Below, one piece after another: positions 1-64,000 of a stretch of DNA of 64,000 bases. Origin of the DNA: Thalia democratica (lineage: Eukaryota); the NCBI GenBank assembly GCA_965202585.1, contig OZ241827.1, forward strand, positions 23,374,001 through 23,438,000, written 5' to 3'. Position 1 is the first letter of the stretch; each line of letters starts with the position of its first letter. A program made the translations under genes and the position numbers. Under the pieces are notes generated by a model. It searched no databases and was not told where the DNA came from. It saw only the letters and a program-made list of their open reading frames with translations.

Positions 1-2563
1 AAATGCTTATGGGTGTTGCTAATGTATCTTATCCTGATAAATTTGGCTCAAAAGCAAGTGAGTTTTCTTAACTTAATTTGTCATACTTAAAATAAAGTGA
101 TCTGCATAAAAAATTTATTTAGATTATAGTAAATTAAATATAAATACTAAAGAGAATTTAAAGTGTTTTTAATTTAACTAAACTGTTATTTTTTATAAGA
201 TTAAGTCTGAGAAGCTTTCTAAAAAATTTACTTCCGAATCCTGTATGGTCACATTTTTTCCTAAAATAGAAGAAAATTTAATGAAAGACGGAAAATCTAC
301 AATGATAGGAAAAACAGACAACTTCCAGCTAGACAAGGTAAATACTCAAAAATTTATTAGTTTTTTCCTAACTTTTAACTGTTATATTATAATTATTTAG
401 TAAAATCCTCACTGGCTTATTAATATCAAGTAGTTGTTGAAGTTTTTTTATCAACTTCATTATTATTTTTTATTAGGTTAAGTCTGAGAAGCTTTCTGAT
501 AACTGTACCTTCGAATCCTGCTTAATTTATTATGTTCCTAAAGTAGAAGAAAATTTAATGAAATACCGAAAAATTACAATGACAGCTAAACCAGACAACT
601 TCAAACTAGACAAGGTAAATGCTCTAAATTTTATTATTTTTTTCCTAACTGTTAACTTTTATAGTGTAACTAGTAAGTAAAATTTTATTTAATTTAATAA
701 TATCAAGTAGTTTTTCAAGTTTATTTATCAACTTCAGTATTACTTTTTATTAGGTTGAGTCTAAGAAGCCTTCTGATAACTGTACCCCCGAGTCCTGTCT
801 AATTTATTATGTTCCTAAAGTAGAAGAAAATTTAATGAAATACCGAAAAATTACAATGACAGCAAAAACAGACAACTTTCAACTAGACAAGGTAAATACT
901 CTAAATTTTATTATTTTTTTCCTAACTGTTAACTTTTATAGTATAACTAGTAGGTAAAATTTTATTTAATTTATTAATATCAAGTAGTTTTTCAAGTTTA
1001 TTTATCAACTTCAGTATTATTTTTTATTAGGTTGAGTCTAAGAAGCTTTTTGATAACTGTACCCCCGAATCCTGTCTGAACAAATTTCTTCCTAAAGTAG
1101 AAGAACAATTTATGAAATACCGAAAAATTACAATGACAGCTAAACCAGACAACTTCCAACTAGACAAGGTAAATGCTCTAAATTTTATTAGTTTTTTCCT
1201 AACTTTTAATTTTTATAGTATGACTAGTAAGTGAAATTTTATTTAGTTTATTTGAAGTAAGTAGTTTTTCAAGTTTATTTATCAACTTCAGTATTACTTT
1301 TTATTAGGTTGAGTCTGAGAAGCTTTCTGATAACTGTATCCCCGAATCCTGTCTAATTTATTATGTTCCTAAAGTAGAAGAAAATTTAATGAAATACCGA
1401 AAAATTACAATGACAGCAAAACCAGACAACTTCCAACTAGACAAGGTAAATGCACTAAATTTTATTAGTTTTTTCCTAACTTTTAACTTTTATAGTATAA
1501 CTAGTAAGTAAAATTTTATTTAGTTTATTAATATCAAGTAGTTTTTCAAGTTTATTTATCAACTTCAGTATTACTTTTTATTAGGTTAAGTCTGAGAAGC
1601 TTTCTGATAACTGTACCCCCGAATCCTGTCTAATTTATTATGTTCCTAAAGTAGAAGAAAATTTAATGAAATACCGAAAAATTACAATGACAGCAAAAAC
1701 AGACAACTTCAAACTAGACAAGGTAAATACTCTAAATTTTATTATTTTTTTCCTAACTGTTAACTTTTATAGTATAACTAGTAAGTAAAATTTTATTTAG
1801 TTTATTAATATCAAGTAGTTTTTCAAGTTTATTTATCAACTTCAGTATTACTTTTTATTAGGTTAAGTCTGAGAAGCCTTCTGATAACTGTACCCCCGAG
1901 TCCTGTCTAATTTATTATGTTCCTAAAGTAGAAGAAAATTTAATGAAATACCGAAAAATTACAATGACAGCAAAACCAGACAACTTCCAACTAGACAAGG
2001 TAAATGCTCTAAATTTTATTATTTTTTTCCTAACTTTTAATTTTTATAGTATGACTAGTAAGTAAAATTTTATTTTTTAGTAGTAAGTAGTTTTTCAAGT
2101 TTATTTATCAACTTCAGTATTACTTTTTATTAGGTTAAGTCTGAGAAGCTTTCTGATAACTGTACCCCCGAATCCTGTCTAATTTATTATGTTCCTAAAG
2201 TAGAAGAAAATTAAATGAAATACCGAAAAATTACAATGACAGCAAAAACAGACAACTTCAAACTAGACAAGGTAAATACTCTAAATTTTATTATTTTTTT
2301 CCTAACTGTTAACTTTTATAGTATAACTAGTAAGTAAAATTTTATTTAATTTAATAATATCAAGTAGTTTTTCAAGTTTATTTATCAACTTCAGTATTAC
2401 TTTTTATTAGGTTGAGTCTAAGAAGCTTTTTGATAACTGTACCCCCGAATCCTGTCTGAACAAATTTCTTCCTAAAGTAGAAGAACAATTTATGAAATAC
2501 CGAAAAATTACAATGACAGGAAGACCATACAACAAGAAAACTAATAACTTTATGTTTATTTAG
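1..2563 (+). CDS. 3' part of an uncharacterised gene made of tandem 138-nt exons encoding a 46-aa repeat (5' end lies outside the window)
   Basis: Exons 1-57 (KCLWVLLMYLILINLAQKQ, donor GTGAGT), 200-337, 477-614, 754-891, 1031-1168, 1308-1445, 1585-1722, 1862-1999, 2134-2271 and 2411-2563 (ends at TAG). Each internal unit is AG|138 nt|GTAAAT, phase 0-0, with consensus VKSEKLSDNCTPESCLIYYVPKVEENLMKYRKITMTAKPDNFQLDK. Eight of nine units are open; unit 8 has TAA at 2212-2214. No recognised homolog. Confidence 0.65.
180..2520. repeat. Tandem array of about nine copies of a 277-bp unit (138-nt exon plus 139-nt intron; one intron is 134 nt)
   Basis: Unit starts at 200, 477, 754, 1031, 1308, 1585, 1862, 2134 and 2411. 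Units 2-9 are highly similar and unit 1 is the most diverged. Confidence 0.97.
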
Positions 2564-5500
2564 TTTATATAAACTGACTTAACGCTGTATGTAATCAAAT
2601 GTAAACAATCATGACTAGTTTTCTAATATCTTATGTGGATTAACAGTTTTTTTTTACCTTTAAATTTTGTTCGTTTTTTCAGGAGGAATCTTAAAGTGTA
2701 ATAAGTAGTTACCTGTAAATCTTGCTTTTATTAAAACTCCTTGATTCAATTACCTGCATGGTTTTCAAAACCGTACTTGCAAAAATAGTTCTAAAACCAC
2801 TTAATCTTACTTTTTAGTTCATGTATACAATTTTTGTTTGATGGTTTTTGTTTTATGTTACTGCTGTATAAACACGTTTATAATTTTGAAATAATAAATC
2901 CTAAACACTACACAAAGAGTTTTATATTAGTAACATGTTAAGTAATAATGAAATAAGCACCTTAAACGGGAAAATCGTTTAAAACATTTAGTTATTTTTG
3001 GACTTTCAAGTAATATCAAGCTGATATATTTTAGTTTAGTCCAAAAATTTATAGCTTCTAATTGTTTAGATTAAACACTGCGTTTTGATTTAAAAAATAT
3101 TTCAATTTTTCAAAAGTAAGACACGTCATCAGTCAGTTTTTATCGCTTAAATACTTCATTGTTTCGTAATCGTACAATACGTACTCAACTTAAGTAGCTT
3201 CTGCGTCAAAAAATCTACCTGCAGTTATAATAATTGCAAGTTTTTATTATTTATAGTTAAAAATATCACTTTACAAACCAAATTAGTAAAAATATATTTT
3301 GTTAGTATAGGCTAGGCTTATTCTATGAATTAAGCTAAAAACACTGAAAAATTTGCTAAAAAAAACTTTATCAACATTTATTAATGGTACAAAGACCAAA
3401 CTTATTAAAAAAAAATGATTAAAACATTCAACTAGTTGAAAAAAAAATTAAATATTAAATATTAGTACTCTAAACTTTTTATTGATCAATAACCTTAAAA
3501 TGCATTTATAGAATATACCCTGTTATAATCAAATAGTTAGTGAAGTGTGCATTCTAAGAACGTATTAAAATTTGAACTTGAAGTTAAAGTTTCAAAGTAC
3601 CCTTATTTTTAACATTTTAATAGTCTTGCTTATGAACTATGATTAGCACAGTTGTATTAAACCACACAAATGTTTAAGAAAAACCGGTGATAAAAAAGAA
3701 TAGTGTATTTCAAATAAAAATTTAAAGCTTGAAACTTACTATTGTAGTCCTCCAAGGCCTGAGGTAGGAACTACCTTTATTCGGGGAAGTCCCCTTTTTT
3801 GAACGCTTCTAGCGTTTAGCTCTTAAGGCTTTTACTGAACTTACCTTACTCATAAGGTTTAACTTAGTAATTAATAAATTGTAATAAAGTTAATATAAAC
3901 AATTTCTTTAATGAAGTGAGTTTATTGAATTTGTGATATTCATATGATAACTAGAAAGCAGAATGACAAAGCAGCCAATTTATCAGTAGAATAAAACTGC
4001 GAATATAAAACACAACAAGTAAACACCAAATTTTACAAATTAAAATGTCTTAATAATGTTCTTAAAGTGTCTGAATGTCACAATCTTAAACACAAAATAG
4101 GTCTTACTAACAATACTACTAATGATACAGAGTCTTAATATATGTCGTGCTTCATGCACAACGATGGCTAAACTCAGCGCAATATAATACGATAATGTAA
4201 ATAAACATCAAGATCTTATAAAATTAAAATAATAAAAAAGTTCCTATAATCAATTCATGTGCCTCTCGCACGGTCTTATGACTTAACTGAGCACATTACA
4301 ATACAGCAATACAATTAAACATAAAGTTCTTATAAAATGACAATCATAACAAAGTTCTTAAACTCAATCAGTGTCTTAAGTTCTTAGAATTAATGTTCTT
4401 TCTGCGCGATCTTATGGCTAACTGAGCCAAAAACAAAAATAACGAACAACATATCGAGCTGCGCGTAGTGCGCAAGCTAGAGGCTAATGAGCATTATAAC
4501 AAACATTTTTAAATTTTTCCTGGTGATTTGATATAAAATCGTCTAACGACCCCTTGCGGTCATTTAAAATACAACAAAATGCATATTTTGTTACACCATA
4601 ACGGTGTAATTTCAATGCTGTTTTGAAAAACTATCAATAGTTTGTATATGTTAAATGCCACTAATGTCAGATGTTATCTCTGTTGTTCAGTTTAAAAATC
4701 ATTCCGTCAACTGCCACGTATCAGTTTTTTTTCTTAAGCAGATAACATGATTTACTCAATAAAAAGCTTTTATTCTCAAAAGAAGTTATAAAGATCGTAT
4801 AGTAGGTTCTTCAAATTAAATAAGATAATAAAAGTTTGTGAAACTGGTTTTAATCATACTTTTCTGTACTTTAACCTAAGCTTTATTTAGATTATTATTA
4901 ATTAAATTGCTTGTTGTAGTTAAATGACTTATTGATGTTAGAAGAAAAAGAAGGTTTTCGCATAAACTTATATTATCATATCAAAAATACCTGATTCTAG
5001 TTCGATATGATATGTATTATATTAAAATACGTTTAAATAACACAATCTACGTAATTATAATTTATTAAAAAGACTTCAATTCTAAAAATGTGGTGTTTTA
5101 TGTAATGTTTTACATTAAACAAATCTACATAAATCAAAGAAAAAAGTAGTAATAAAAATAAAATACTAGACATAGTTTAACAAAATGAGGTGTAGTTTAT
5201 TATTTGTTTTAAGACTTAAATCTCTAAGTAAAGCTTTTTTTTTAATGTCAGCAGCATTTGTAAACAATATTTATGTTTTAAACTACTTAGTATAATAAAC
5301 TTCTATATAAATGAATATTCTTTCATTATTAATCTTTAATATATTTTAAATACTTTTTAGTTTACAAACTTTAAGAGTGAAAATATATTTTTCACTACAA
5401 TCACTGCCAACCGTTAAAAATTAGTTTTGTATGTTTTTCAAAATAATAAAGCTAAAGTTTTTAACAGCCTAAACATAAATTAAGAACAAAAATCACTAAA

Positions 5501-7828: not shown

Positions 7829-10800
7829 TTATGCGTTCGACTGAAAAAAGCAATGTTAGTTATTTGTATTTAATTAATTAACAACATTAAATAATAATAA
7901 AAGTACGTATTAAAAATTTTTATAAAAGGTTTTACTCATTTTATTTAAGTAAGTTAAAAATGCTGTTTTTGTTAAAGCTCTAACTTAAGAATAAAGTTAA
8001 AACAGTTTTTCTAAATAACCAAAAAATTTACCGTAGGCTGTAAGTAAGCACCTAACAAAGTTTGCCTCTAATCGACTGATGTCATGCATTTTATTATTAC
8101 TTTTACTTACCCCAAACGCCATAGGGTTATCGAAACCCTTGCTCTGATCTTTGTTGTAAGTCGTGTCGGGAACAGACGTGCTCTTTGATGAAGAATTCTT
8201 CTTGTAGTAGATTCCACCAAACACTGCGGCCGCTATGACAACTATCAACGCAAGTATTATTCCGAACACGGCACCGCCTGAAAATTATTAAACAGAGAAA
8301 TTGATAGGCTCCAACTAAAGTCATAAACAAAACTGACTAGATAACAAAATAACTCAAGTTAAGATTTTGTTTGTAAAAAAAAGTTATCATATATTTCACA
8401 AAAACTAGTTTTTTTTAATAAATGTTTATTTGATAGTAAAGAGGCAAGAGTGAAGTCTTTAACTTTTTTAATTTAGTTGAAATTGTATCGTAAATCATAA
8501 GATGAGCTATTATATATATTAACCTGACAACCCAGTGCTAGAATCATCTTTGGACGGGTCAACTGGATTAATTGGTTGTCCGCCAGATCCTAAAAGTTGT
8601 TCGATTATATTTTAAAATTTTTACTAGTTTAAATGCTTTAGAAGTGGCCAAGGTTAGTTCAAAAACATATTGATATAAGTTACAACTATAAGTAACTTAA
8701 CTATGAAAAGTCAAGTTTTAAAAAGTAATGTTTTTTCAGTGAAATAAATATGTTAAATTTAATTTAAAACTACATTATTTTATAAATAATGCTGATAGCA
8801 GTTTTTTTTTAAAGGTGTTTTTTTACAAGCGTTACGTTTAAAAAAGCTATGAAGTCGAAAGAAACAACTACAACACTGCATGTAACACAACACGATGTTT
8901 TCAATTATGACGTCACACAACCTGACGGGTAGAAGCACCCAGTGATGTTGCCTCCGGCGAAAGTTCTGTCCCAGCAGCAGCCCCTGCTCTCAACACACTG
9001 GTCTTCGGTGATTCCCGCGAATCCGCACTCATCACGTTCGTTCACCGCCACCTTGCATACCGAGTATTCTGTTGAATATTTCGAATGTTGAGTATGTGTT
9101 TTCTCGAAATACTTAATGACTTGATCGTTTATAAGTGATATTAAGCTTTTTTAAGGTTAAGTTTTGTTGTTTTTGTTTTACATAGACACGTTCTTATAAG
9201 TTAGACCTGTAACACCTTAGTTTTTCATTCTGAATATTCAAAGTTTTTTTTATTCAATGTTTAAAGTCTTTTTATCGTTTTTTTATATAAAACAGATAAG
9301 AACTTCGAAATGACTTTGATTTTCATGTTCTATTTTATTAGAAATATTTATAAGTTTTATTATAAACATTGGAAAAAGTTTAATGTCTTTTATGACTAAA
9401 TACAAAAGAATATATTTTTTTAATAGTTATAAAAACACTAGTAAATAAAGATTTCTTTTGGGATGTATAATGTAGAAAAAATATAAGTTGTTTCAATTCT
9501 TAAAAAACTCAACTAGTTAAAATATGTTTTTTAAAACTAAATAAACTTTTAAAAAAATATCTAAAATTGAACCTAATTTTCTTAATTTAAAAATTGAATT
9601 TAAAAAAAAATCAATTCAACTACAACACAAAACGTTTCATACAAAAAAAAAGTTCTCAACCACAAAGCTTAAATCCTACAAAGTTAAAAAATCTATACTT
9701 TTTTCAAACCTTTAGGCCTCTTGCAGACGAACCCCCTGGTTTCGTAGCAGGGCACGTCGTTCCAGCTGCCGTCCCACGGGTACATCTCCACGCACTCCTC
9801 CCCGTCCTGGCCGTTCGGCTCCCCGTTCGCCCAGTTCGAGTACTGGTAAGGAGAACTGTCGCTCCACGTCCATCCCTCTGTATGTGACTCGTTTAGTTTG
9901 TATTAACTTTTTTATACTGCCAATTTTTGAGTACTGAATAGTTTTTCGGGTTGTGTTTTTTAGCAGTTTAGTTGTCAAATTTTCAGTTAAATTTATGGAA
10001 TTTTACTGAACCTATTCCGTTTTAGCCAAGTTTACTAAGTTACAAATAAGTTTTTTTTAAATAGTAAATTAATTTGACAAAAACTTTTGAACATTTCAAA
10101 ACTCACCGTATCCGTTGCTTCTGAGGCCGATGTACAAATTGTGGTAGTTGGGTGAAATCTTGTCGACCAACTGTTTAACTTCTTCTGGGCTGTGAAAGCT
10201 CGCAAGCTCGGCGTTTCGCTTCTTGCATGAAAAGTCCGCCTCCGCCCATGTTTTTGTTTCAGAAGTATATATTCCGGGCTGAAAAATAACTTCCGTAAGC
10301 TAGATTACTAAGCTTGATAGAATATTTTACTAGTTATTGTTTTTTTCACATCATATCGTGAAGTAACATCTATTTTTTAATTCTATTTCAATAAAGTAAT
10401 GTGAATAACAGTATTATACATCCGCGATAGAACGTAAATGGAAACTTGCCGTTTTTTGCTACTTTTATTAATACTAACTTTAAAAATGGAAAAGCTTAGT
10501 TTTTTAGTTGTTCTTAATTAGCACTTGGTAAAAACTACATTTTGTTTCTGTACAAATTACTTCAAGGCCAGAAAAAAATAAGTTTTGCCTAGCAACGAAC
10601 CTCTACATAGTAACAGTCCCTTCCGTCGCTGAACAACCAGTCGTTGTCGCAAACTCCGTCTTCAACGGGGGTTTCCGGGGGAGGGGGAATTTCCTGCAGA
10701 ATTTTCTTGCAAACATAGGGGAGCTGGGTGTTGCAGTTTACCCCCTGAAGCTGGTTGCTAAGCACCTGCCACCTTCCGTTGCTGTGTTATGAAAATTGCG

Positions 10801-40167: not shown

Positions 40168-40962
40168 TCACAGCCGAAATCTGACAGCTACCAGGTAAAC
40201 CGGCTTCACCAACTTGTCCCCGACCAGGAACTCGTCGCATACCCGCTCACCAACCGGGTCCCCGATCGAGAACTCGTCGAAATTCAAACTCCCCTTGCTC
40301 AGGCCCCTTCCCATGCTGTCCCTGAAATGGCAGTCGTCTTCCATGGTCACCCTTCCCTTGTACTTCTCGAAAGGGTAGAGCCCCTTGATTTTGGGCTCCA
40401 GATCGAACACCTTACACTTCTCGGGTCGCGGCACCTCGCACACGACCACGTAGACGACCTCGTTGGCGAACGGGACGCACTCGCACCTGTGCCACGGCTC
40501 CCCCAAATCGCTGTACTTGGGGTCGCACGCCGTCACCGCCGCAAAGCTCGAGTTGGTTAACCGCACCTGGCCGTTCCAGCTGACCCCGTACGACAGGCAG
40601 TTCGTCCTGCCGAACCCTTGCCACAGAAAGTTGTCCGCGTGGTTCACCCGCATGCCGAAGTACAGAAGCATCCCTCCCTCGTACCTCACCCCCGCCTTTT
40701 CCTCGTTCCGGGAATTCCCCACGATGTTGTACACCCGCAGTATTTCTGGGGTCCACCTGGCATTGGTGTGCCAGCTGGTGGCCATGAAGGCCCTGCAGAC
40801 GGTTTTGTGGTCGTGGCTGGTTCGCTTCAAGGGGATTACCTTGTACTTGTTCTCGCGCCTGTGCACCCCCTTTTCAAGGTCGCACGCCTCACACCACTTG
40901 GGGGGTTCGGTCGTTTTTTTCTTTTCTGCTTTTTTCTTTCTTTTTCTCATGCAACAGAACAT
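40168..40962 (-). CDS. PARP/ADP-ribosyltransferase catalytic-domain-like protein (264 aa), probably catalytically divergent
   Basis: Single coding exon preceded by acceptor TTTTACAG (exon starts 40975), ATG at 40962. It aligns by eye with the PARP1 catalytic fold: PEILRVYNI~LEVIDIFKI, LLYFG~LLWHG, NFLWQGF~GILSQGL, GQVRLTN~GKGIYFA, VVVCEV~ILLGEV, KYKGR~SVKGL, DEFLVGD...KPVYLVAVRF~NEYIVYD...NLKYLLKLKF. Confidence 0.8.
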   Translation of the reverse strand: MFCCMRKRKKKAEKKKTTEPPKWCEACDLEKGVHRRENKYKVIPLKRTSHDHKTVCRAFMATSWHTNARWTPEILRVYNIVGNSRNEEKAGVRYEGGMLLYFGMRVNHADNFLWQGFGRTNCLSYGVSWNGQVRLTNSSFAAVTACDPKYSDLGEPWHRCECVPFANEVVYVVVCEVPRPEKCKVFDLEPKIKGLYPFEKYKGRVTMEDDCHFRDSMGRGLSKGSLNFDEFSIGDPVGERVCDEFLVGDKLVKPVYLVAVRFRL

Positions 40963-43493
40963 TTTGCGTCTGATCTGTAAAAATACTAATTTTCTGCTTT
41001 TGAGCATTTTTTCAGTATTGCTGTTGTAGATAGGTTTTTTTACGTTTTTTTACTAAGTTACTTTTAGGTACATTTAATAATAAAGCAATTTTATATCTAT
41101 TTTTATTGTGTAAGTAGCTTTTGTTTCACTTTGTTTCAGATAGAAGTAAACGCTTTCATAATTGTATTTAGTTATTTAAACTATGAAATTTTTTTTTTGA
41201 CGTTTTTTATTTTATGTATCAAGACTTACGTTTTTTTACATTAATGTTTTGAATAAAATAAGTTTTGAAACTCAACTAATTTTAGTATTATTTATTAACT
41301 GTATTATAATATTTCTTTAGTCTCTCGCTTTACTGTTAAACTGAAGCAGTCTGAAATTTTAAAATAAATTAATAGAAACTATCTGTTTTTTATACCATAA
41401 TCTTTTTTGCTCTGCTCAAAAATTTTCATTTCAATGTTAAGAAGAAAGCATTTAAAACAGTTAGACTTGGCGTATTGTTACAAAACAATGACATATTTTA
41501 TAAGTTTTGAAATTTTTAAAGTATCCGTACCAGTTTAAAATATTTAATAGAACTAAAAAGTTTTAGTAGTTAGCAATATTTTTTTTGTAGCAGAGTTGCA
41601 TTTGAAATCTAACTTTAATGAAACTCATAAATCTCTAATGAAACTTTATTAGATACTATTTAGTAAATATTTTATAAGTTAATATGTATAATAATAAAAA
41701 CGCAAAGTTTCATTAAAGATAAGAAATTAATCATTCTTAAAGGAAAAAAAAACTGAACATACTTTAAACATATTCTTATAAAACAAAAATAAACGATTTT
41801 TTGAATTTTAAGCTTTTTAAAACTAATAATTAGTTTGCTTCAATTGCTTATATTGTTGCGTTTATTTTGCTTTTTAAGTACTACAAACACTAGATATATT
41901 AAACTTTTATGTTTGCTAAAATATAAGTTTATTAACCCTAACTACTTTTAAACCAACGTAAGTATTTAAGAACTATTTTTACAGGAAGTTTTGAAGAAGA
42001 TATCAAAATATTACTTACTACAAAATAATAACAACTATCACGAACTTGATATAAAAAAAGATAAAGTTCAAGTATTCAAAAGTCGATAAAAAGATTATAA
42101 ACTGAAATAATTTCGCAGTTTCTTAAAGCTTTAAGTTTTTAACTTTATACAAGAGTTAGTTATAACAACTCACGAAAACAGTAAAGTATTTACATCAAGT
42201 ACTTCGAAGTAACAACATTAAGTTCTTAAGTCTTTATAATTGAAAAAACTACAAAGTTAACTCATAGTTGTAAAAGTTATAAACTTTTTTAGTTTAATTT
42301 AATCTTAAACTTAGGAATTTCATTATAAGTATTTAGATTAATAATGTTTGAGTTTAAAAGTATCTTCTAAACTATTCTCTAATTTTACAATAAGGAACTT
42401 TAACAAGCTTAAATTAATGTCAATAGCCATTGATTTTACAATCAATTTCTTACTATAAATTTATTAAAACTTCTTTCTTAAAGTTTTTATAATAAGACTT
42501 TGAAAATAATTTCTTAGATTTCTGTTTACTTAATATTAAACAAGACAAAATTAAACGAATGGTTTACTGTCTTTTTGATATAATATTAAAAAAAATTAGA
42601 TTTAAGAGGTATATCAATTGTTTTAATCAAATAGGACTTATTGCAATCTTACTAGTTATTTGAAAATTTAACACTACAACGTGTATTTATCAATGAATAC
42701 TGAGTAATGTAATTTTTTAGTAATTATTAGTACTTTGAGTAGAACTAACGTACTGGTAGAAATATACATTGTTATCAAAAGGTATTTTTTATAAAAGATA
42801 ACTTTAATTTTGAATGTTGTTTTACAAGTAGAAAATGCATTCCAACTTAAAAATAGACAACATTTAGAATAAATAAAATGATGTAATTTCTAAAATTTTC
42901 TTTAAGCATTAAAACTGTTTCTTAAAAAATTTTTGCAGAAATAAATATTAACTAACTTGAAGTTTTTAAATTTTTAAACAGATTTCTAAAAAGCTCTCGC
43001 TGTTATTGTTTTTTTTTTAATTCTTTATAAATATTTTCAAATTGGAAAAACGTGATCATATCTTAACATCATACGCGTTAATTTAAAGTAAAACACTTAA
43101 ACTCCAACCCTTTCACCTGATCTAGATCGGTGTCGGGTCTTCATAGTTTGACCTGTGGGGATCCATCGTCGCGATTAAAGCAAGCGATCTCACGTTCATG
43201 TTTTATTCATGTTATAAACACGCTAAACAGTAATTACTAACATACAAACTAAAGACTTAATTTTTCATTCTTAGGTTTTAAAAGGCACGTTTAAAATAAT
43301 TAAACTAAAAAACTACAAACTTAAAACTAAATATAGCAACTTAAGTTAGTACTCGCACCACTTTAATGTATTTTATCGTGTCTAAAAATACATCTGAACA
43401 AAGTAAATTACCAGAAAATTTTAGTGTTTTTTTTTATTTATATTTTCATTCTTAAAAAAAAAATGTTAACGTTCCAGTGTTAATTTTTTACAG

Positions 43494-62009: not shown

Positions 62010-64000
62010 ATGAGCTCATATAAGACAAAATTAGTTAAAACTGCTTCTGTTGAGATTTGTAAAGTTTGTAAAAATGATTTTAAACCTCCAAATTTTGAAT
62101 CCATATATTGTGATGGGTGTAAAAGATGGATACATTTAAATTGTTCTGGGCTATCTAAGCTTAATTTTAACTTCTATTCTTATAACAGTGATTTATTTTA
62201 TTGTAAAAATTGTACAAATAATTTTAAGTTTGACATTGTTGGGAGTGAAGACTTTTGTAAAAATTGTTTTAAAAGATTTTCTTCTAAAGATAAATGTGTG
62301 TATTGTGAAGGTTGTTTTAAATGGATGCATTGCAAATGTGTCAATATACCAAACAAGAGTCTTAATAAGATATGTAAAAATGATTTACCTTTTTTTTGTA
62401 AAGATTGTGATTTGAACATGTCTGTTTGTTATAGATGTAGTTTAGCTTGTAAAGACTCAGAAAATTGTTTAACTTGTTTTTTATGTAATAGAAAATGTCA
62501 TTTTAAATGTACAACTAGTAAAAATGTTCTGTACCAATTTAAAAGCAATAGTTTTAGATTTTATTGTGATCTATGTGAAAAATCTGTTTTTCCATTTCAG
62601 AATGTTGATAATCTTGACTATGATTGCTTTAATAAACCTATTAAGATGAATATTAGTAGAAAATATGACCGATATTTAGACTTAAATTGTGTGAATTTTG
62701 GAAAAGAAAATACTATTAGTGTTGTTTACATGAATATTAGAAGCATAAATGCAAATCTACATAAAATTGAGGAATTTTTGAATTTAGTGAAAAATCTACC
62801 TGATATAATCTGTGTTTGTGAAACTTGGTTGACTAGTCTGAGACCTTTTATGGGTAAACTGCATGGGTATGATTTTGTAAATAAACTGTCTAATAGTAAT
62901 CAATCTGGTGGTGTTGCATTTTTTGTAAGAGCTTGTCACTCTTATGAGGTTGTAGAAGGTATATCATTTAAACAGTGTGATGTAGATGATTTGTGGATCT
63001 CTATTAAACTTGGAAACAATAAACATCTTATACTTGGTAATGTGTACAGACACCCAAGCTCTACATTTAATACTTTTAAAGAAAATTTCGTAAAGTTTTA
63101 GATAAATTAAATGAAAAGAAAAGAGATTTTATAATTGGTGGTGATGTAAATATAAACTTATTTAGTAGAGATCAGCGTACTTGTGACTATTTGAATTGTG
63201 TTTCTAGTGCTGGTGCTAAACAATTTGTTGATTCCCCAACTAGACTTTCTTCTGATTGCTCCTCTAGTTCTTTAATTGACCATGTTTATTCTAGTTTTGG
63301 GCGTGAGAAGCTAAATGTTAATGTTGTAGATTATGATATATCTGACCATATGCCTGTTGTTTGTGAAATTAAATGTTTAATGAATAAAAATGAATTGTGT
63401 TATCAAAAATCAGTTCAAGATTTCAGTAAGTTTGATGTTGGAGTTTTTTTAAATGATCTTAGAAGGAACTTGGGTAAATTGAAAATGAGTATAACAAAAG
63501 GTGAGGATATAAATGAGTGTTGGAATGAGTTTGAGAGTGTGTTTGGTAGCACAGTGTTTTATCATGCACCAATTAAAATTTTAAATAAAAAAGACCAAAA
63601 ACTAAAAGCTAAACCTTGGATTTCAAAGGGGATTATTGTTTCAATTAAAAAGAAAAATCTAATGTTTAAGTCTGCCATCAAAGATAAAACTAAAAAATTT
63701 TCAATAACATTCAAAAAATATAGAAATATTCTGAATCGAGTTATTGAACGATCTAAAATACTTTACTTTAAACAGGTTGTAAACAAAAACAAAACAAACA
63801 GTAAAAAGTTGTGGAAAATAATTAACAATATTGTTGCTACTAAACCTATCTCTCATTCAAAAATCAATGGTGTGCTTGATGTGCATGGTAATGTTGTTGT
63901 TGAACCAAAAAAAATTGGTAATGTTATGAATAAAAATTTTGTGTCAATTGCTGATGATTTAATAAAAAAAAGAACACATGTTGCTTGTGATTATGATAAG
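62010..64000 (+). mobile_element. CR1/L2-type LINE ORF2: 3xPHD plus APE endonuclease plus linker toward RT (runs off the window); one 1-nt frameshift near 63097
   Basis: Three C4HC3 fingers, then FPF, YMNIRS, CVCETW, GGVAFFV and GNVYRHP. After a -1 shift the frame continues IIGGDVNINL, PTR, LIDHVY, SDHMPV, KPWISKG, KKLWKII and stays open to 64000. Confidence 0.92.

Follow-up and report, generated by a model that had tools for sequence, protein, structure and literature searches.

The DNA analysed here, called the window below, is a stretch of 64,000 nt from Thalia democratica (GCA_965202585.1, contig OZ241827.1; G000:C2:23374001-23438000 of the 802-Mb genome). At its left end lies a 277-bp tandem array, whose units may be the exons and introns of a young gene for a secreted repeat protein. 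Tandem Repeats Finder reported a single array with a period of 277, 8.5 copies and 91% matches. Nine exon-like parts were delimited in it, and their starts are those given for units 1 to 9 in the list. The predicted features, in window coordinates, are the following.

1-57, plus strand: exon 1, the putative signal-peptide exon, which begins 6 nt outside the window at G000:C2:23373995 with ATG AAA, has 21 codons (MKKCLWVLLMYLILINLAQKQ) and ends in phase 0 before GTGAGT
58-199, plus strand: intron 1, 142 nt, from GTGAGT to a T-rich tract and AG, about 80% identical to intron 1 of the paralogue described below
186-2533, plus strand: the 277-bp tandem array as delimited by Tandem Repeats Finder
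200-337, plus strand: unit 1 exon, 138 nt, open, the most diverged unit, with 63% amino-acid identity to unit 6
477-614, plus strand: unit 2 exon, 138 nt, open, phase 0-0
754-891, plus strand: unit 3 exon, 138 nt, open
1031-1168, plus strand: unit 4 exon, 138 nt, open, with an LNKFL variant at residues 16-20 that is common to unit 9
1308-1445, plus strand: unit 5 exon, 138 nt, open
1585-1722, plus strand: unit 6 exon, 138 nt, open, the reference unit in the searches
1862-1999, plus strand: unit 7 exon, 138 nt, open; the next intron (2000-2133) has 134 nt
2134-2271, plus strand: unit 8 exon, 138 nt, with an in-frame TAA (2212-2214) at codon 27
2411-2563, plus strand: unit 9, the terminal exon, which has no donor and reads to a TAG at 2561-2563
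2893-2898, plus strand: the first AATAAA 3' of the stop, a possible poly(A) signal, weak at five such hexamers per kb in the window

In each of units 1-8, a T-rich tract and AG are followed by exactly 138 nt and then by GTAAAT, and the phase is 0-0. A preliminary description of this DNA, made from the letters alone, had ascribed this layout of AG, 46 codons and GTAAAT to every unit. It applies to units 1-8, and unit 9 departs from it in having no donor; that the last unit runs on to a TAG was correctly described. The introns of the array measure 139 nt, except the 134-nt intron after unit 7, so that unit 7 has a length of 272 nt instead of 277 nt. The difference is a 5-nt deletion inside the intron half, which agrees with the earlier statement that the sole length variant is intronic. 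The diverged unit 1 was likewise found to be free of stops, as had been stated. The frame that starts at the ATG of exon 1 is open across units 1-7 and unit 9 and is interrupted by the TAA in unit 8. Therefore, not all units are open, and the openness that had been implied for every unit does not hold. The exon halves have a GC (guanine plus cytosine) content of 33% and the intron halves 18%, in this array and in the paralogous one. The homology of unit 9 to the module is lost after codon 36 to 41 (judged by eye, and at 123 nt by BLAST). Within the module, a patch at residues 16-20, between the conserved ESC and PKVEE, occurs in the versions LIYYV, LNKFL and LITFF and variants of these. We considered this patch as a hypervariable site (15 of 67 variants, P 0.005 uncorrected) and dropped the claim, as P was 0.13 after correction for the choice of the window of residues.

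The preliminary description had placed a hydrophobic exon in matching phase upstream of the array and had left its start codon to be sought beyond the window. Both parts are borne out: the exon ends in phase 0 before its donor, and an ATG with A at -3 stands 6 nt before the window (letters ATGAAA). The encoded peptide consists of MKK, a 12-residue hydrophobic run and NLA before QKQ. Judged by eye and with a run-length rule, it has a positive n-region, a hydrophobic core of at least 10 residues and a small residue at -1. By this layout, exon 1 would encode a classical, cleavable-looking signal peptide. The product had been proposed to be secreted or membrane-anchored; the layout of the signal peptide is consistent with secretion, and no membrane anchor was found beyond the cleavable-looking signal peptide itself. 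About 40 nt before the ATG is a TATA-like sequence (TATTTATA), and the block surrounding it is about 95% identical between the two paralogues. The paralogue exon 1 has the same peptide minus an in-frame 9 nt, a length difference that is a multiple of three. Farther upstream, an inverted pair of elements of about 110 nt is located 2.4 and 1.7 kb before the ATG (L012 7517-7627 and 8196-8295). This element is very abundant (6572 candidates at first look, with matches at 80-94% identity on many chromosomes) and resembles a miniature inverted-repeat element or the ends of one. The upstream DNA also contains an older 390-nt repeat (L012 8977-9373).

A genome-wide DNA search with the unit gave matches only in the window and at C2:23275011-23279329 on the minus strand, and a protein-level search of the 802-Mb genome found no array beyond the same two. 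The second locus (G000:C2:23275053-23279526, minus strand) is an inverted paralogue that lies 94 kb from the window array. Its array is 4.3 kb long versus 2.3 kb in the window. It has its own ATG signal exon and 16 exons, each exactly 138 nt and open, and its unit periods range from 274 to 278 nt. The acceptor and the donor are canonical, with equal phase at both borders, in window units 1-8 and in 15 of the 16 paralogue units. The paralogue units are of a different subtype, with about 65% amino-acid identity to those of the window. The two loci have 2.6 kb of upstream DNA in common at 88% identity. The upstream DNA and the array together occur exactly twice in the genome, and only short pieces of the upstream part are interspersed repeats. 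In the window copy, homology ends within unit 9, and the 3' flank is unique in the genome. We rejected the idea that the array is the cargo of a transposon, given the two occurrences and this unique flank. A dispersed satellite was rejected as well, since only two arrays exist in 802 Mb; unlike typical non-coding satellite DNA, the unit also has essentially one open frame, a GC step and indels confined to its intron half.

In a tree of the units, each array formed its own clade. Window units 2-8 made up a tight clade on a long stem (0.092), and unit 1 was placed outside it, closer to the paralogue clade. Therefore, the interiors of the arrays were renewed after the duplication of the locus and the edge unit escaped. 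In addition, the paralogue holds repeated three-unit blocks of 826 bp, and the window array contains near-twin units (6 and 8; 4 and 9). These block duplicates and the separate clades show that the arrays lengthen and homogenise in steps of one to three units, by unequal crossing-over or by conversion, and that they did so independently in both copies. The earlier proposal that the length changes by amplification of an exon-intron unit is thus upheld.

The indels, reading frames and cysteines were counted in the 23 complete units of both arrays. Gap cells numbered 0 in the 138 exon columns versus 90 in the 142 intron columns, and the approximately 10 separate indel events were all intronic. 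This bias has a P of about 0.001 under uniform placement and of 0.006-0.02 if indels arise only in homopolymer runs, a model in which the exons contain 31-41% of the run positions. Frame 0 was open in 22 of the 23 units, and the other two forward frames had more than five stops per unit. The reverse frames were closed except for one, which was open in 15 of the 23 units. The intron halves held 3.6-7.7 stops per frame. On this alignment, selection visibly keeps the reading frame and admits no indels into the exons. The preliminary description had named stops and frameshifts that build up equally often in the 138-nt and the 139-nt parts as a sign against coding. Substitutions proved to be equally fast in both parts, and frameshifts did not.

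The contigs of the DNA runs were colinear with the genome across exons and introns, with no 139-nt joints. At window position 228, codon 10 of unit 1, the reference has TTT (Phe) and the contigs of all three DNA runs have a G, which gives TGT (Cys). With G in every run, the reference must carry one private letter or more at the locus. The G brings back the initial cysteine of the C-x4-C pair, and the T of the reference would be an assembly error or an allele private to the individual that was assembled. A contig of the second sample covering unit 9 had four exon differences, three of them non-synonymous, with no stop and no frameshift; these differences were about as dense as those in the flanks. 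No difference was listed in the contigs at the TAA of unit 8, and an unlisted position does not prove agreement. One contig of the second sample joins window position 396 to 961, passing from the intron that follows unit 1 into the one that follows unit 3, and omits 564 nt or about two units. This omission may be a copy-number difference or a short-read collapse of the repeat, and the shorter side of the joint is only 20 letters long.

That the module belongs to no recognised family, as had been stated, was confirmed in every collection searched. The seven exons submitted to Pfam gave 0 families at E up to 10, a word search with unit 6 gave no relative, and a profile of 19 units gave no match among 1.84 billion representative proteins. 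No relative of the module was found in the ESM Atlas, in the JGI metagenomes or among the PDB sequences, where the best profile match had an E of 0.09, and Rfam contained no family at the locus. As a control, the neighbouring open reading frame at 40171-41049 (minus strand) matched ENA proteins at 93, 58, 51 and 43% identity; therefore, the protein library contains sequences from relatives of this animal. AlphaFold2, run on one unit with the 19-unit alignment, returned a single long helix through an invariant proline with a predicted local distance difference test score (pLDDT) of 67, a model too weak to use.

The surroundings of the two arrays include parts of a lectin gene. Window 9636-9919 is the last C-type lectin exon of a minus-strand receptor gene; it is GC-rich and has the EPN and WND motifs. 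A 97% identical copy of it is found at G000:C2:23273347-23273634, just past a 1.36-kb repeat beside the paralogue; therefore, the duplication also took part of the lectin gene. The spacing between the array and the lectin exon has been rearranged, with 7.1 kb in the window versus 1.4 kb at the paralogue. The 1.36-kb interspersed repeat (G000:C2:23273670-23275020, minus strand) occurs at least 40 times on various chromosomes, with 85-96% identity, and is probably a transposon. Terminal exons of the lectin receptor gene also lie at window 8000-8284 and 8908-9150, both on the minus strand; one encodes a transmembrane stretch with a short tail, and the other shows by eye a trefoil (P)-like cysteine pattern. 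The nearest upstream gene candidate is a 435-codon open frame of 48% GC that is read from the other strand, 7.3 kb before the array (L012 1437-2741, minus). At the far end of the window, 62010-63098 (plus strand) is a 363-codon open frame of 27% GC with a GC content at third codon positions (GC3) of 0.18, which is unusual for such a length in the window.

We give an even chance to the reading that the locus is a young, lineage-restricted gene for a secreted protein of 46-residue repeats, grown by amplification of an exon-intron module. A number of results weigh against it. No relative of the module was found, so conservation cannot vouch for function. The depletion of stops in frame 0 was not significant (expected 3.1, observed 1, P 0.18). 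The divergence of exons versus introns was 0.154 versus 0.190 between the arrays and about 0.06 versus 0.05-0.06 within them. The variable columns at the three codon positions numbered 21, 18 and 19, with no third-position bias, and the ratio of non-synonymous to synonymous rates (dN/dS) was 0.85 for the consensus sequences of the two arrays and 0.6-0.8 in the pooled comparison. On three deep branches, the non-synonymous to synonymous changes (N:S) were 24:4 versus a neutral site ratio of 4.1:1. From these comparisons, purifying selection on the amino-acid sequence is not visible, and the residues appear to drift almost freely. Furthermore, the GC3 of the array exons is 0.34 versus 0.5-0.85 in the neighbouring genes, and the duplicated C-type lectin exon beside both arrays is 97% identical versus about 85% for the array exons, so genuinely constrained exons of comparable age do not look like those of the array. 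Nor are the cysteines fixed: C15 occurs in 22 and C10 in 18 of the 23 units, and extra cysteines occur at positions 20 and 30. The TAA at 2212-2214 in unit 8 is TTA in the other units, and unit 2 of the paralogue has TG where the acceptor AG is expected. The 3' ends are not common to the two copies: the homology of the paralogue ends 37 nt into its last intron, where the 1.36-kb repeat begins. Finally, a single search for RNA runs with the locus gave three runs, which belong to two samples and of which none is recorded as RNA; any expression would be low or confined to certain tissues.

Much of this would also suit a decaying relic, in which a secreted-protein gene that once functioned had its module amplified and its locus duplicated and neither copy is now useful, the frames having stayed open through youth and conversion. 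The neutral-like substitution in the exons, the stop in unit 8, the lost acceptor, the truncated paralogue, the lack of a run on record as RNA and the flank-like density of differences in unit 9 of the second sample all point in that direction. A relic would leave unexplained that all of the approximately 10 indel events fell outside the exon halves and that the indel in exon 1 is a multiple of three. Nor would it explain why the start codon and the exon-1 donor are intact in both copies, and why all but one of the 25 exons and all but one of the 25 acceptors are intact too. We hold the relic to be possible and, on balance, doubtful. A minisatellite that never coded, in which an AT-rich genome produced by chance the open frame, the bordering AG and GT and an ATG exon with a hydrophobic reading, is improbable in our view. 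In the shuffle controls, a symmetric open AG..GT stretch of at least 138 nt arose in 5% of the dinucleotide shuffles of the unit, and a signal-like, in-phase ATG..GT exon in 1.7% of the shuffles of the 600 nt upstream. Either figure alone is not rare in an 800-Mb AT-rich genome, where there are thousands of arrays, so a few such coincidences are expected and such pairs could arise a few times; the module also has neither a third-position bias nor relatives. However, all the coincidences would be needed simultaneously and in phase, together with intron-only indels (P about 0.001-0.02), a sharp GC step exactly at the AG and GT borders, the in-frame 9-nt deletion in exon 1 and a conserved core-promoter block. 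Once these indels, the step in GC and the deletion are added, a purely chance origin is unlikely, though not impossible. The units might instead be kept for splicing or for other reasons at the RNA level, as a spliced non-coding RNA with an incidental open frame. The best conserved part of the module is the 3' end of the exon with the donor region (columns 101-160, divergence 0.04-0.10 versus 0.27-0.38 elsewhere), which fits such an RNA, as does the lack of visible amino-acid constraint. It fails to explain the exact 138 nt in 24 units, the single open frame and the in-phase start codon with its signal-peptide reading, and we consider it very improbable.

Returning to the young secreted-protein gene, we propose the following course. 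Two inverted paralogues of the gene would lie 94 kb apart. In each, a promoter-proximal exon would supply the cleavable-looking signal peptide, and downstream of it the tandem module would consist of a 46-codon, phase 0-0 exon and an intron of about 139 nt. If spliced per the predicted signals, the transcript would encode a secreted, lysine- and glutamate-rich protein of 46-residue repeats, each usually with an N-x-T sequon and a C-x4-C pair. Unequal crossing-over or conversion would add and homogenise units while the frame is kept. Transcription, splicing, secretion and any function are what we infer for this gene. The TAA in unit 8 would terminate the protein of the window copy after 7.6 units; alternatively, exon 8 may be skipped in frame, or the TAA may be a private allele or an assembly error. 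That in-frame skipping of exons could generate combinatorial isoforms is something we purely infer from phase symmetry alone. A bolder version, which we think unlikely, is that this is an orphan secreted-protein gene early in its life, made up almost wholly of one exon-intron module that spreads like a minisatellite. Its length (9 versus 16 modules, possibly varying among individuals) and the sequence of its modules, in the LIYYV, LNKFL and LITFF patch at residues 16-20, would then diversify fast with the frame alone kept, and in-frame skipping would add isoforms.

The kringle IV type 2 repeat of human apolipoprotein(a) is a case of a gene that varies via tandem amplification of an exon-intron module. 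There, as in Thalia, the repeat unit combines exon and intron, the symmetric phase of the exons lets the copy number vary with the frame unbroken, and unequal crossing-over is at work (here in blocks of one to three units). The two systems differ in size and content: the Thalia unit is one 138-nt exon with a 139-nt intron, whereas the kringle unit is 5.5 kb long with two exons, and the Thalia module matches no known domain. The micro-exon genes of schistosomes encode secreted proteins with symmetric exons of 6-36 nt that are not tandem copies of one another. They resemble the Thalia locus in having a signal-peptide exon followed by many symmetric exons, in being lineage-restricted and fast-evolving, and in that exon-skipping isoforms are possible in principle. 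In contrast, the Thalia exons are 138 nt long and nearly identical to each other. A further likeness is with the phase-symmetric, disorder-prone modular exons of conserved human genes (PMC3632108), as the Thalia module has phase 0-0 exons, a charged sequence and a low-confidence fold (AlphaFold2 pLDDT 67). Unlike those genes, the Thalia locus is an orphan in which residue constraint is not detectable. Tandem exon duplication in general has been reviewed (PMC9013439).

If the locus is not expressed, it is a warning that tandem repeats of AT-rich genomes can imitate a full gene model, and that only frame-keeping statistics and RNA separate a gene from such a mimic. If it is expressed, it would show how one exon-intron module, amplified in the manner of a minisatellite, can build up and extend a new secreted protein. 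The paralogues, with their different copy numbers, would then constitute a natural experiment, and a module without known relatives would be added to the poorly known secretome of pelagic tunicates. The bolder version given above, if true, would directly exemplify how a tunicate gene grows through satellite dynamics.

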